From: Bugula neritina
Lineage: Eukaryota; Animalia; Bryozoa
Direction: 5' to 3'
NCBI GenBank assembly: GCA_964035545.1
Contig: OZ037765.1
Location: 20,956,995-21,020,994, forward strand
DNA: 64,000 bases
Numbering within the stretch: the first letter of the stretch is position 1; every line of letters begins with the position of its first letter. Below the pieces are notes generated by a model. That model saw nothing but the letters and a program-made list of their open reading frames with translations, did not search any database and was not told the DNA's origin. Positions 12,134 through 18,100 of this stretch are shown here, one piece after another. A program made the translations under genes and the position numbers.

Positions 12134-15100
12134 TCACTGCAATGTAGTAGCGGTTAAACTATGCACACCAGCCGGGTAGACTACTGGTGGGCATTCAATG
12201 TCCTCTGTTGCCAAGGATTCAGAAGTAAGCTCTACGTGCATGGGACCTGTTTTCTTCCTGCAATATTAGTATTATTTCTAAACATTGTTTTTATTGCATA
12301 GAACCAGTTTCATATCCAACTGCAGGATAAACAAAATATTATTACAAAAGCTTTCTAGACAGAGCAAAGAAGCAATTGCTTTTGCTGTCACCATTACAAC
12401 AGGCCGTGTCTAGTTTGCAGCATACTGCTCTTTTTGTTTTGACACAAAATCTTAGATGGCTTTAACCAAAAATAGTAAAGATTAAATTACAAAAGATCCA
12501 TTAATTTGAAAATTTATTGCAAGAAATGTTGAAGTCAATGTTTTCTGCTTGGCTTGTGTTTTGCATAATGTTGTTCTTAATAGCATTTTAGTGCAAAGTC
12601 AACAGGTTGTTTTTCTTCCATTTACTATAATTTATGCAAAGTGTGCACATAACATTTAAATAAAACAAGTCCTATGTATGTTTTGGGAATTTCAACAACC
12701 AAATAATCTTGCAAACATATTTTCAAATCAAAAGATGAGATTAATCACTGCTTGTTTAAGATATTGCATAAGTATTTAAATTGAACATAAAATCTTACTT
12801 AGATTTCAGTATTATGCAGGTTATGGCAGTAGCAACAGCAGCAATAGCGAGAATTCCGACAGTTACACCGATGCCAATGTACAATGGCATCTTGTTAGCT
12901 GGGGAACTTGTAACTTGCTCCTCAGTCGTTTGAATTGTGGTTGAAGAGACTATCATTGGTGTAATAATGTTGGTAATTTCGAAGCCTAGAAAAAAGTAAA
13001 TTATATTTTATAAATCTAAGGCTAATATGATTAGAAATGTTGCACAGTTATTGCACTTTCAAAAAGCTTTTGGGCTAACATATAAGAAATAAAAACAGTT
13101 ACATATAGTTTCAAACACTTTATACAGGTCATATAATAATATGATAAACTGCTGTGTATAATATTAATACCAGTAGCAGAGGTAATGTTGTCTACTGCAT
13201 CTTCAAAGACCTCCAGTAAGTGTTGATGACTGAGGTAACCAACACCTGGTACCTCCACGTAGATTCCTATTTGAAGATCATTATTCTCATCATATTTAGG
13301 GAACCCTGGAAGTCTTGAAAAGTACTCTTTGTAAAAAGTAACCAAGTCAATTGTAGCTCGTTTCCTGTTAATTAAATTTAGAACACAGCTAACGTTGAAA
13401 TAGCAAGCTAACTCAACTAGTCAACAAATATTGATAGCAAAATGTTTAACTATGCTGTGATATAGACCATAGAGTCATGCAGTATCTTTGAAAGCTTTAT
13501 TAATTCATTGCAATATTTGACTGTAACTAATTATATTTTGTAAAATTTATTTTTACTTTAAAATAATTGTCTAACCTTCTTTTTACTTGAGATCCAAGTA
13601 CAAAGTCACATGATATATCAGAGCATCTTAGATTTGCAAATTTAGATAAGGTATCAAAGACCGTTTTCTCCTTTTCCACAGTGTACTACAATATAACGAG
13701 TTATTTATTTTATATAGTTATAACTTATAAGTATTGTTTGAAGTTTGTTTAATTTTATTAATTAAAAACAAATTTTTTAGTAATAATTAGCACATCTTTT
13801 AGCCAATTATTCATTTATAGAGTTGATTGTCACGACATCAATTTTAAGACATTAAGGCTGAATATTAACAAAGAGTAGAAATATAGGGGTTACCTCAGCA
13901 GAATCTGCTCCAGCAAAAGAGAACTTCAAATTATTTTCTTCAGCTTCTGTGTCAACATTTCCAGTAATTTCTGCTACTGGACTGGATGGGTTAACAACTA
14001 AAACATATAGCTACTGAAACAGCATGCCTCCAGGCAAATCAGTTTAGCAACTGAACACAGGTGCTTTTTGCCGAGCTTCATACAATTTTTGTCCAATTAA
14101 TAGTAAATGAAGTTTAATTGTCTGATTTTGTCTATGCACACATTTAGCGTGAGCTCTATTATTTACACATATTTCTAAATAATAACTCATAAATTCACAA
14201 TGCAGCATGAATATAATTTAAAAAAAAAACATTTTTATGAAATTACTGTTATTGATTGAAAGGTTACACTGTAACAGACTTCATACATGTGCACACAATT
14301 CTTACCTAAACACACGCCATCGACTTCTACAAAACTTGCTGCACAGACACATTCATATCCACCTGCTGTGTTAGAGCAATCAAAGGAATCATCACAGTCA
14401 AAGGTCTCTTCAATACATTCATTGATGTCTACAAATAGTATAAAAAGTTGTTTGTCACTCATATCAGCAGCAAGTTTGTTGCAAACGACAGATAGGAAAT
14501 CTAAATATAATTTCATCTCACAAACCATTGCAAGTGAATCCATTAGTGTCAAGAACATAACCAGATGCACAGCTACAGTTGTATCCACCATCTGTATTTG
14601 TACAGGTCTGAGAACATGCATCTGTTCCCAGAGCACACTCATCAGTCTCATCACATGTTTTTCCATCATCATTTAGAGTGTAGCCTTTGACACATGAACA
14701 CACCTCTGTTCCATTTACTTCGTTACACAAGCCATTGTCAGTATCACAGTTGTTTGGTTCAGTACATGGATTTGCGGCTGTTATATAAACATTATATAAA
14801 ATTATTTCAGATTTAGTAATTAGTTTCAGTTTACCTTATATAAGGTAGGTCTTGTAACTTTAAGAAAAAAGCAGCAGATTGTCAATTATTTTTTTATTTT
14901 CTAGCAATTTTTATTTCTATCAACGCTTACTATTAGGGAACCAAATATGTTTTTTAGTACTTACGTTCGCAACTAATTAAGTCATCGCTAAAAACCATAT
15001 TTTCAGGACAACTGCATGTATATGATCCATCAGTGTTGTCACAAATTTTATGGCAGGGATCAGATATTTCACATTCATTAATATCTAAAAAGGATAACAG

Positions 15101-18100
15101 GTTTACAGCTCAATTGCACAGAATAGGTGCTTTTTTGTGTGTGAGTGTTGGAGTGTGTGTGTCTATAAGCATCTTACTTGAAAGCAAAATGATTTAAACA
15201 TGTCGTAACATCACAATCAAACTACCATCACAAGTAGCTCCATCTTCATTAAGCTCATAACCGTTAGAACAGAGACAGACATATGATCCTGGAGAGTTGA
15301 TACAGATGTGATCACAACTACTTTCATCTTCACATTCATCTATATCTGTGCATGTTTTACCATCTCCTGTGTATCCAGGTGGACAGTCTCCACATCTGTA
15401 AGTAGTATGAATATTTATTAGATGTTTAGAGATACATAAAGATAAAAGAGAAACCTACAGATATAATATCAACACAGACTTACGTGTATCCAGTGTGATC
15501 AGCTGGTGGTGGACTATCTACACACAGAACTGATGGATAACAGGGAGAAGCTACCAGAGAACATGCATCTAAATCTGTATCACAAGTATCTCCTGTATAT
15601 CCAGTGGGACAGATACAATCCAGTACCACAGAGCTGTGAAAGTGTATCATAAATATATGAAAGTGAAACAACTATTGTCATTTAAACATTTCCTATTTAC
15701 GAATGCAGGGATAATTTATAGAAATTTACAAAGAGTCAAAGTGATATTTTTGGGTAATGCATGTACTTTAAAATGAGGTGAGTGTGCAATATATAGCTAT
15801 TAAACATGTAGCCATTGCTTCAGATACATTTTTACTTGACAACTATAACATTGACAGTGGCCTAAGCTACTAAGTTCTTTATTTTACTAATTAGCAACTG
15901 TAGTTCAATCTTCTGTAGCACTCTTAGATCTTTTTTTTTTCAACATACATTAAATTAAAAAGCTAGTAAAAATATGAACATGTAAGTTTACAACAACTTA
16001 CTCAGTTTCTGTAGAGAATATCTCATCCTCAGATAAGGGTTCACATGTACCATTATTTACACATTTGCAGATCATAGCCAGGGGAATTATACTAGAAGTA
16101 GCATTCTTGTCATCCTAAACAAAAAGCAGTTTGCAACAAAATCTAAATTATAAGTATTTAAAAATCATTATTGTTAATAGCAATAAGTCATGGGTTCGAA
16201 CCCAACAAATGCCATAAGTAATGTTAGGAAAAGCGTGCAGTCATAATTGCTTTTGTGCCCTTCTGAATAAGTCCTTAGCCGATTCAACAAAAAGCCCTTC
16301 CATCAGAGTTTTTTCTCAGGGATGGAAGCTATAAACTAGCGTAAGCTTTTTTATAGCTAATTACAATTTGATAAAAAACAATATAAATTTTTAAAGTGTG
16401 TACCATTGCAGACACAGTGAAGTTAGAAAAGCTGTCCAGATCTTCTATTACACCAGATATGTTAACTTGACCACCATCAACTACTATGCTGCTGTCTACA
16501 TTTACTGAAACAGTAAATGGGTCGCCATTTGTGTCATTCACGTGAATCATGTAGTGAAATTCTCCAGTTGGTGTTATCATTACGTAATAGACAGCATAAT
16601 AGATTTCTGGAGGGAAGTTGTCTACAAAACATAGTGTCTTTTTCGCAAGCATGACTATAACATACATGTGTTTTTGAGTTTATTAGCTAGAATTGTAAGT
16701 TTACACGATATTAAAAATTTGAACTTACTTAAAGCTTCATTTGCAGCAACACTGTCTTCAGCTGTCTTTTTACTGCTTTTACCAACTTCAATGTTTCCTG
16801 TGACAAATACATCATACAGGCAAGCATGATCATCTCCACATGTTTCGTATGCTTCTGTCTTGACTTCCTCAGAAGACCACACCCAGTTATCAATGTTATC
16901 AGTGAAGACGGGTACAAATGAATTGTTGTTATAAGTTGACCAGTCAGTTCCATCTTCAGTATAATACATGATAGAATCCTCTTCAGATACAGCAACTAAA
17001 ATTCAACAAACCATTGCAGACACATGATTAGGTAATATAATTTGAAAAGTATCAGCGTTACCAGACGGGAGTCAGAACAATACTTACAAGTGCTCGCCCA
17101 ATCAAATAACTCCATTTCTGTAGAGTTAATAGAGATGTGTCCAGTACCATTCAAGTAAGTTAAATCATTTTCCTGATCTCCATCAAACACTCCAGTCAAA
17201 CCAACTGTTGAACCCTTGAAACTTGCTGGCAAGCTGAGAGTTAGTGTTAGCATTTCCTAAGTAAAAAGATAATCTTATTTTAGTCTAATGAAAGTTATAA
17301 AGCAGTATTCAAGCATGACAAATATATTACAAATAAAAATGTTAAATTTCAAAATTTGTAGCATTCTAAGCTAAGAAAAGAGTCTCATTAGCTTACATTT
17401 TCAGGAGCTGCGGTTATAGCCAGACCAGAGTAGAAGAGAACTGTCAAGCTGACATTATCTCTTTCAAACATGATGTTACTATCTACTCCTTCTATAGTCT
17501 GAGTTCCATTAGCATCTTCCTTAATTACTGAGATATCCACTACTGTACCATTGATTATCAACTGAGTTGTGTTAGCTACTCCTGCACCAAGAGGAGACTT
17601 GTTGATCTGAATCTGTACTCTGGGTAATCCAGATACTGCTATGCAGACTGCACTGAAGTATGTAGCTTGTCCCAGACCTAAAGTACGACAGCTTATTTAT
17701 TATCACCATCATGTAATAAATTAATATGTAATAAATTAATATGTTAATTTGGGTTTCATACATTAAGTTATGAAATTTATCATAACTATATCTAAATGTA
17801 CTTACCACCATCTTCCAACTTGACTCTTTCAGTTCTGGCCTGTATGATTGTATCATTGTCTCCAATCCTTGTGAATAAATATTCACCAAGTCCATTAAAG
17901 GTGTATGAAAAGCCATCAGATGTTACAATATGAGGATCTCCAAACCATGGCCCTAAATTATATGTATAGAATTTAGGCAATTTTTTAAATTACATAATTC
18001 TTTCAACAGACAATCCATTTTTTTATTTATACTAATCTCAGCGCTACAGCAGCTCGATAGACATGAGCTAGTAAATTAATGTTAAGGACAAGTAATTTTT

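Follow-up and report, generated by a model that had tools for sequence, protein, structure and literature searches.

The window analysed here is a stretch of 64,000 nt from the bryozoan Bugula neritina that carries gene B, on the minus strand, and gene C, on the plus strand, of a MUC4-like gene family. The two genes lie head to head, and about 37 kb separates the segments of high identity (patches) that they share. Repeat arrays are found in the window at positions 1-4127, ~28570-29500 and 42250-49100. The family has at least ten copies in the genome; eight are on chromosome 1, all inside 0.3 Mb, and chromosomes 5 and 6 have one each. Ten copies were compared (A, B, C, P1, P2, P3, P4, P5, P9 and P10). 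A, B, P3, P4, P9 and P10 are termed the core group, and A is a young duplicate of B. C, P5, P1 and P2 are old lineages with synonymous sites saturated relative to the core group.

Vertebrate MUC4 and SUSD2 are NIDO-AMOP-VWD proteins with GDPH autocleavage. Like them, the bryozoan genes have a GDPH motif at the start of VWD, C8-3_MUC4 and EGF modules and, further upstream, a putative mucin repeat; the layout of the family is a putative NIDO, VWD with GDPH, C8-3_MUC4 and then EGF repeats. The GDPH motif is kept in all ten copies, and its role in autocleavage is predicted from sequence. Pfam searches, performed exon by exon, place VWD in exons x2 and x4 of gene B, followed by C8-3_MUC4 and EGF_CA. 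The upstream NIDO match is a lone exon fragment (E 0.007, 16.8 bits, under the gathering score of 25). Three candidate AMOP blocks scanned in the same exon-wise manner gave no match at E ≤0.1. Unlike the vertebrate genes, the bryozoan gene has multiplied to at least ten paralogues, in which cleavage and membrane anchoring are predicted properties. A literature search turned up no account of such a family of MUC4-like surface mucins in bryozoans.

Exon borders are based on joints in RNA contigs, GT..AG at nearly all intron ends of the examined copies, and an open reading frame. The splice joint of intron i2 and the joint 16995/17088 are present in RNA contigs, and intron i8 is spliced out in them. 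Domain searches used single exons; joined exons served solely to check the reading frame and to calculate dS and trees by script.

Mosaic identity of genes B and C

BLAST and global alignment reveal five high-identity B/C blocks (ungapped), which alternate with diverged sequence, together with one weaker block (Table 1).

Table 1. Exons and introns of gene B from the GDPH exon onward, and the matching patches of gene C (window positions; pS, synonymous divergence)
Feature	Positions	Strand	Remarks
B exon x2 (GDPH exon, VWD start)	17806..17952	-	5' edge of homogenised region; differs from C 54622-54768 at 7/147 nt, only synonymously; Pfam VWD positions 4-35, E 1.5e-4; ends or joints of RNA contigs at 17952 and 17806
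B intron i2, 128 nt	17678..17805	-	co-converted in part; initial 53 nt identical to C 54769-54821; ~90% matched overall after indels
B exon x3 (mid VWD)	17397..17677	-	homogenised; 92% nt identity to C; pS 0.22 to C vs 0.78 to P1 and P2
B exon x4 (VWD end)	17088..17256	-	homogenised from ~nt 42 to 15 nt inside downstream intron; pS 0.11 to C; Pfam VWD positions 122-155, E 2.4e-5
B exon x5 (C8-3_MUC4)	16729..16995	-	first ~120 nt near-identical in ten copies; identity decays 3'ward; PF23263 E 9.6e-14; P2 differs at 4 sites within first 96 nt
B exon x6	16404..16621	-	not homogenised with C; vs C 56404-56615: 58% nt, 48% aa, pS 0.76
B exon x7	16002..16114	-	not homogenised with C; 52% nt identity; pS 0.79
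B exon x8 (EGF-like)	15484..15633	-	most strongly homogenised; pS 0.05 to C, 0.08 to P1
B intron i8, 88 nt	15396..15483	-	co-converted; 2/88 differences to C 57469-57556
B exon x9 (Ca-binding EGF)	15226..15395	-	first ~110 nt homogenised; last 60 nt mosaic
B exon x10 (EGF)	14965..15084	-	not homogenised with C; vs C 57845-57964: 55% nt, pS about 1.0
B exon x11 (two EGF modules)	14526..14777	-	homogenised save last 25 nt; vs C 58644-58895: 24 differences, 13 in last 25 nt; Pfam EGF_CA E 1.8e-13
B exon x12 (EGF)	14306..14428	-	intermediate; 81% nt to C, pS 0.42
C patch I (x2, i2, x3)	54617..55155	+	vs B 17957-17405, about 90%
C patch II (x4 and 15 nt of intron i4)	55565..55751	+	vs B 17259-17073, 92.5%; the 15 nt past x4 identical in B and C
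C patch III (x5)	55928..56217	+	vs B 17005-16716, 87%; 100% to ~77% going 5' to 3'
C patch IV (x8, 88-nt intron, x9)	57311..57729	+	vs B 15641-15223, 94%
C patch V (x11 without last 25 nt)	58634..58870	+	vs B 14787-14551, ~95%
Weaker block	B 14443-14295 / C 59929-60078		81%

The original prediction was of an old duplication followed by repeated, patchy conversion from the GDPH exon onward. The old duplication is supported, and so is later patchy replacement, which sets in at the acceptor of that exon and includes two short introns. The seven differences in the GDPH exon, whose translations are identical in B and C, the 53 identical nucleotides at the start of i2 and the two differences in i8 were all reproduced, and x11 is indeed near-identical until its end. 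Divergence of the interleaved exons x6, x7 and x10 was also found (52-58% nucleotide identity), as was that of most introns, which do not align between B and C. For example, neither the intron between x3 and x4 (140 vs 405 nt) nor that between x4 and x5 (92 vs 201 nt) can be aligned. The claim that all upstream NIDO/AMOP exons are strongly diverged does not hold for the block B 21038-20943 / C 51786-51881, which is 84% identical yet has a pS of 0.53. With this pS the block is constrained, not converted. Exon n5, with 84% amino acid identity and pS 0.53, has the look of constraint without conversion. The proposal that the membrane-anchored subunit is homogenised while the distal one diversifies is a rough description only; x6, x7 and x10 belong to the same subunit and are as diverged as the NIDO-side exons.

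Uniform dS across exons, named beforehand as evidence against conversion, is clearly not what is found. B-C pS is 0.05-0.28 in seven exons (x2-x5, x8, x9 and x11) and 0.42-1.0 in the other twelve blocks. With x12 (pS 0.42) left out of the pooled test, the background consists of eleven blocks (pS 0.53-1.0), and pooled pS is 0.20 in the patches vs 0.74 in the background (Fisher p 1.5e-45). The B-C path length is 0.11 in patch exons and 1.02 in background exons. Since background synonymous sites are saturated, with a path length of ~1.0 substitution per site, B and C are old duplicates, as had been proposed. In a GENECONV-like permutation of third codon positions, 0 of 1000 permutations reach the observed score, and p is <0.001 for the pairs B-C, B-P1, B-P5, B-P2 and C-P1. 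The clustering of B-C near-identity is far beyond chance.

Mixing of copies by consensus building or polishing could in principle create identical tracts. Three variants private to B (15465, 15475 and 15274) are absent from a high-depth short-read contig of run X1, as expected from such mixing, but Logan contigs drop minor variants and the missing B-private variants carry little weight. The published Bugula neritina assembly was built with hifiasm from HiFi reads at 132-fold coverage, and its text names no polishing step (PMC11480708). In addition, the tracts are 2-13% different from one another, and ten copies have variants of their own. Independently, short-read contigs from run X1 give multi-copy depth for the patches, with a summed word depth of 700-1400 vs 130-250 in unique introns. 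A polishing artefact is unlikely, and mixed copies are hardly credible as the source of the mosaic.

Constraint versus exchange

The patches might alternatively have arisen with no exchange at all, if splicing enhancers, RNA structure or codon usage constrained their nucleotides very strongly and kept them slow in all copies. The protein of P2 is better conserved in patch exons than elsewhere (65-78% vs 37-50% amino acid identity), as such constraint would lead one to expect. However, pS between B and P1 is 0.66-0.86 in x2-x4 and x11, and that between B and P2 is 0.46-0.81 in all seven patch exons. Patch exons thus vary synonymously in other copies, and there is no general nucleotide-level constraint. 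It should be pointed out that the first ~120 nt of x5 are kept near-identical in all ten copies, so that there is no unconverted control, and nucleotide-level constraint is possible in that segment.

Intron i8 and the adjoining exon x8 give a similar picture. The intron is exactly 88 nt long in eight copies, with 1-9 pairwise differences (median 3), whereas P2 differs at 45-48 positions. In x8 the median difference between copy pairs is 6/150 (eight copies) and P2 differs at 33-37 positions; it is fully diverged in both segments, which argues against constraint. When i8 was examined as a possible hidden RNA gene, no Rfam match above chance was found and the fold was not unusual (z-score -1.3).

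Branch lengths point the same way. Comparison of proportional with unlinked branch lengths in IQ-TREE rejects the proportional model (LRT p 1e-57 for all positions, 1e-28 for third positions). At third positions, branches of the core group, P1 and P2 are about equal in length in x2-x5 and x11 and in the background, whereas other branches are much shorter in these patch exons than in the background: 0.13 instead of 0.81 for C, 0.25 instead of 1.21 for P5 and 0.035 instead of 0.61 for the stem. The P1 branch falls from 1.34 to about 0 in x8 and x9. A uniformly slower rate does not explain the patches, as only the C and P5 branches collapse, together with that of P1 in x8-x9. Even the constrained exon n5 has reached its pS of 0.53. 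AU tests on the patch data find no significant topological conflict, which would fit constraint: monophyly of the core group is not rejected (p 0.07-0.47). The patch trees are star-like, and the case for exchange therefore rests on heterogeneity of branch lengths and dS and on intron identity rather than on topology. Taken with the branch-specific collapse, constraint without exchange is very unlikely.

Participation of other family members

The original prediction was of conversion between the inverted pair B and C. Exchange is not specific to this pair, as the same patches are shared by at least ten copies on three chromosomes and are near-identical in most of these. In the patches, B is 84-100% identical to A, P3, P4, P9, P10, C and P5, and the EGF pair with its intron is also common to the very distant P1. 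In x9, positions 15273-15254 carry a distinct haplotype that C shares with P1.

Some observations would fit direct, recent and repeated conversion specifically between these two inverted neighbours, beginning with their head-to-head arrangement and the ~37 kb between patches noted above. Exon x5 of C is nearest to B and A (88%, vs 79-84% to other copies), and so is x11 (90% vs 82-86%). States shared by B and C against A were found at two sites only, positions 78 and 102 of x11, and one of these is also present in P2. Against such a private exchange, A and B are equally similar to C in every patch, and the copy nearest to C is P10 in x2 and x8, P1 in x9 and P9 in x12 (87.5%). Both B-C differences in i8 (15475 and 15465) are private to B, and C has the family-wide sequence. 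Finally, B and C have a pooled pS of ~0.20 in the patches, which is four- to fivefold the A-B value of ~0.04-0.06. As A and B are equally distant from C, and as B-C pS exceeds that of A-B, most events are older than the A/B duplication or drew on other donors. Conversion was said to be recent; it is later than the B/C duplication, but recent in a relative sense only. An exchange restricted to B and C is improbable. In the NIDO-side block n3, A and B have 18 clustered differences, which points to a further event inside the core group.

The mosaic quite probably represents interlocus gene conversion within the MUC4-like family of at least ten copies, as judged from these sequence comparisons, and not a private affair of B and C. 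Short DNA-templated tracts of ~150-550 bp would time and again have replaced certain segments by core-type sequence, or the transfer would have gone the other way. The converted segments would be x2-x4 (VWD), x5 (C8-3), and x8-x9 and x11 (EGF) in C and P5, x8-x9 in P1, and the start of x5 in all copies. While the mosaic itself is shown, its molecular mechanism, the direction in which sequence moved and how many events took place are inferred.

Tract edges and significance

Conversion tracts would mostly end at or just inside introns, since introns of old paralogues probably lack enough homology for heteroduplex formation. Short introns that lie between convertible exons, i8 (88 nt) and i2 (~115-130 nt), would be carried along. 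In four of the five blocks the 5' edge falls exactly on a splice acceptor, which is neater than expected under simple models, and several 3' edges are inside exons.

Such edges raise the question of whether spliced or part-spliced transcripts served as template. Conversion mediated by cDNA would explain edges at exon borders and the unconverted introns i3 and i4; pS is of similar size across x2-x5 (0.11-0.28), yet these two introns do not align. However, i8, i2 and 15 nt of i4 lie within identical tracts, and a spliced template would not carry them. Intron loss is seen in none of the ten copies, and the 3' edges within exons also argue against a cDNA template, which is therefore very improbable, slightly more so than constraint without exchange. 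Chimera formation by crossing-over was rejected, as at least ten crossovers between inverted genes would be required to produce the alternating patch and non-patch segments.

Interlocus conversion by DNA-templated tracts, the reading preferred here, has precedents. In Caenorhabditis, most tracts are 50-200 nt long and, owing to the fast divergence of introns, generally exonic; compact introns are included in some cases, and orientation is irrelevant (PMC3966223). Mosaic concerted evolution by ectopic conversion has also been described for the GOT1 paralogues of Tigriopus (PMC3728101) and the ruminant CEACAM1 family (PMC7042247), and ‘mosaic divergence’ for tandem HMA4 copies (bioRxiv 10.1101/2025.10.29.685298). 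The bryozoan tracts (~150-550 bp) similarly form homogenised islands beside saturated divergence. They are mostly exonic with some compact introns, orientation is irrelevant, and other chromosomes take part. Unlike in the known mosaics, the hot segments are common to at least ten copies, and the 5' edges are unusually exact on splice acceptors. The bryozoan mosaic is a new example of a known process, an ordinary and clear case with no new mechanism.

For this mucin family, phylogenies and divergence dates have meaning only if they are derived segment by segment. The family also provides an internal control for conversion versus constraint, with P1 and P2 as unconverted copies and n5 as an exon that is constrained but unconverted. 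With it, a surface-mucin family joins the clustered families whose modules are kept constant by conversion. A more speculative reading, which is improbable at present, is that homogenisation is non-neutral: conversion that passes through the filter of selection might leave the VWD, C8-3 and EGF modules directly behind the GDPH cut almost exchangeable among ten genes. If true, ten mucin genes on three chromosomes would have one common processing or docking platform, and the shed outer parts (the mucin repeat and the NIDO side), along with some juxtaposed exons, would be free to diversify.

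Mosaic similarity of genes B and C

BLAST of the window halves and a global alignment show that B and C, two old MUC4-like paralogues, are colinear and inverted, and share five ungapped blocks of high identity plus one weaker block. Between the high-identity blocks, exons are ~52–58% identical and introns cannot be aligned. The original prediction of recent patchwork conversion between B and C gave counts that prove exact: 7/147 differences in the GDPH exon (the encoded protein is identical), an identical intron prefix of 53 nt, and 2/88 differences in a short intron. The near-identity of exon x11 save at its end also holds: of 24 differences, 13 fall in the final 25 nt. 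A block on the NIDO side is 84% identical at both the nucleotide and protein levels, with a synonymous difference (pS) of 0.53.

Exon borders of B from the GDPH exon onward (x2–x12) were placed by GT..AG sites and an open frame; upstream n3–n9 and downstream d13 are tblastx blocks and represent candidate exons. An exon-by-exon Pfam scan finds VWD in x2 and x4, C8-3_MUC4 in x5 and EGF_CA in x11, a weak match only for NIDO, and no match for AMOP. RNA-run contigs contain the joints 15395/15484, 16995/17088, ~17677/17806 and 16621/16729, as well as ends at 17952. With a few percent difference from B, these contigs show expression of family members with a B-like structure, rather than of B in particular. 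One B intron carries a dispersed repeat of ~177 nt, which is found further at two places in the window. It has at least 20 copies of 79–85% identity on many chromosomes and probably represents a small non-autonomous transposable element.

With respect to possible assembly artefacts, the tracts differ by 2–13% and contain variants specific to single copies. The matching HiFi/hifiasm assembly has 132-fold coverage, and the text describing it names no polishing step (PMC11480708). Contigs of the short-read run X1, which may come from the assembled specimen, have a summed word depth of 700–1400 on the patches versus 130–250 in unique introns; the presence of several near-identical copies would give such an excess. 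The putative B-private bases 15465, 15475 and 15274 are absent from these contigs.

Patches common to the gene family

The window occupies positions 20956995–21020994 of chromosome 1. A whole-genome search with B 14200–18000 as query reveals at least 10 copies of the family (see Table). There are no stop codons in x2–x12 of any of the 10 copies, and nearly all delimitable introns of this stretch start with GT and end with AG; the sole exception is one P1 intron whose border is probably imprecise. Non-patch exons yield trees with a core clade of A, B, P3, P4, P9 and P10 (100/100 support), long branches for C, P5, P1 and P2, and a B–C path of 1.02 substitutions per site. Copy A, with 96–98% identity to B along the query stretch, represents a young duplicate of that gene.

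Table. Positions of genes, family copies and associated elements
Feature	Location	Strand	Remark
Gene B	window ~29500 down to 13100	minus	strongly skewed repeat array at start
Gene C	window ~42250 to 63200	plus	strongly skewed repeat array at start
P1, P2, P3, P4, P5, A, B, C	chromosome 1, all within 20.71–21.02 Mb
P9	chromosome 5
P10 (long intron i8)	chromosome 6, 10705760–10714093
Foreign DNA in A	chromosome 1, 20925272–20943526		outside window
Isolated x5 fragment	chromosome 1, 20896111–20896275
~177-nt repeat	window 16178–16354; 30910–31099; 35065–35250		first is in B intron
NIDO-side block	window 20943–21038 (B); 51786–51881 (C)
End of x9 in B	window 15226–15285		last 60 nt
Block n3 of B	window 23369–23641

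Copy A is interrupted between x7 and x8 by ~18.2 kb of foreign DNA. In P10, the intron after x8 (i8) is 8331 nt instead of the usual 88, presumably by insertion, and both x8 and x9 are intact. An isolated 166-nt piece from the hot segment of x5 has 91% identity to B and a frameshift, with no other family exons within 7 kb.

Both the sliding comparison of B with each copy and per-exon identities show that the B–C patches are the same segments where nearly all copies agree. Exons x2–x4 have 84–100% identity across the core copies plus C and P5, and x5 is near-identical over its first ~120 nt in all 10 copies. Near-identity also extends over x8, i8 and 110 nt at the start of x9 in eight copies, among them P1, which is 45–60% identical outside this stretch. 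Patch by patch, the copy nearest to C is P10, B, B/P3/P9, B, P10, P1, B and P9, and C nowhere resembles B clearly more than A. Over the final 60 nt of x9, C has in common with the highly divergent P1 a distinct haplotype (e.g. at 15269–15263, 15254 and 15230), unlike the B/A/P4 type; two or more types of sequence thus circulate among the family members.

Conversion versus constraint

The question arises of whether the patches reflect conversion or constraint. By Nei–Gojobori counts per exon, pS between B and C is 0.05–0.28 in patch exons and 0.53–1.0 in 11 background blocks, with x12 intermediate at 0.42; pooled values are 0.20 for patches versus 0.74 for background. The same patch exons have pS values of 0.46–0.86 in B–P1 and B–P2, outside the segments shared by those copies (x8–x9 in P1, the beginning of x5 in both), and therefore are not slow in general. 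The NIDO-side exon block n5 (84% amino-acid identity, pS 0.53) is constrained but unconverted; it illustrates the effect of constraint by itself and provides an internal control.

A branch-length test with the background topology fixed compared partitions differing by a rate factor alone with unlinked branch lengths. The rate-factor-only model is rejected (p 1e-57 for all positions, 1e-28 for third positions). At third positions of x2–x5 plus x11, the within-core, P1 and P2 branches are roughly unchanged in length, whereas the C, P5 and stem branches are five- to seventeen-fold shorter; in x8 plus x9, the P1 branch drops to about zero. In a GENECONV-like permutation on third positions, B–C and four other pairs reach significance. 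AU tests on patch data do not reject the core clade, and thus distances and introns, rather than topology, carry the case. For intron i8, the Rfam scan gives no match above chance level and folding shows nothing unusual; the divergence of this intron (1–9 differences) resembles the synonymous divergence of x8.

Timing and anatomy of the tracts

In the patches, pS is ~0.20 for B–C, four to five times the A–B value (~0.04–0.06), and A and B are equally far from C. Thus, most events took place before the A/B duplication or came from other core donors. Only x8–i8 (pS 0.05) is as young as this duplication. B and C share just two sites against A, both in x11, and one of these is also in P2. The original prediction stands with respect to the kind of process, conversion, but is too narrow in confining it to B and C and places the events too late. 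Separately, A and B differ at 18/273 positions in block n3, against 1–2% elsewhere. B agrees there with P3, and A in part with P4, a pattern suggestive of a distinct conversion event among core copies once A and B had duplicated.

Four of the five blocks have a 5′ edge no more than a few bases from a splice acceptor. At the 3′ side, edges fall within exons (x5 fades gradually, x9 stops ~60 nt short of its end and x11 25 nt short) or just into introns (15 nt past x4, 53 nt and more past x2). Introns i3 and i4, although flanked by converted exons, are unalignable and of unequal length, and several separate short tracts are therefore required. Surviving conversion tracts are mostly 50–200 nt in length and usually exonic, because introns have too little homology to pass the threshold; some tracts take in compact introns, and orientation plays no role (PMC3966223). 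The B/C tracts agree with this textbook picture. Conversion templated by transcripts is hard to reconcile with the intron sequence carried inside tracts, or with the retention of every intron in all copies. The literature searches found no description for this gene family and phylum. The mosaic is a well-supported instance of ordinary interlocus gene conversion among the members of a clustered family.
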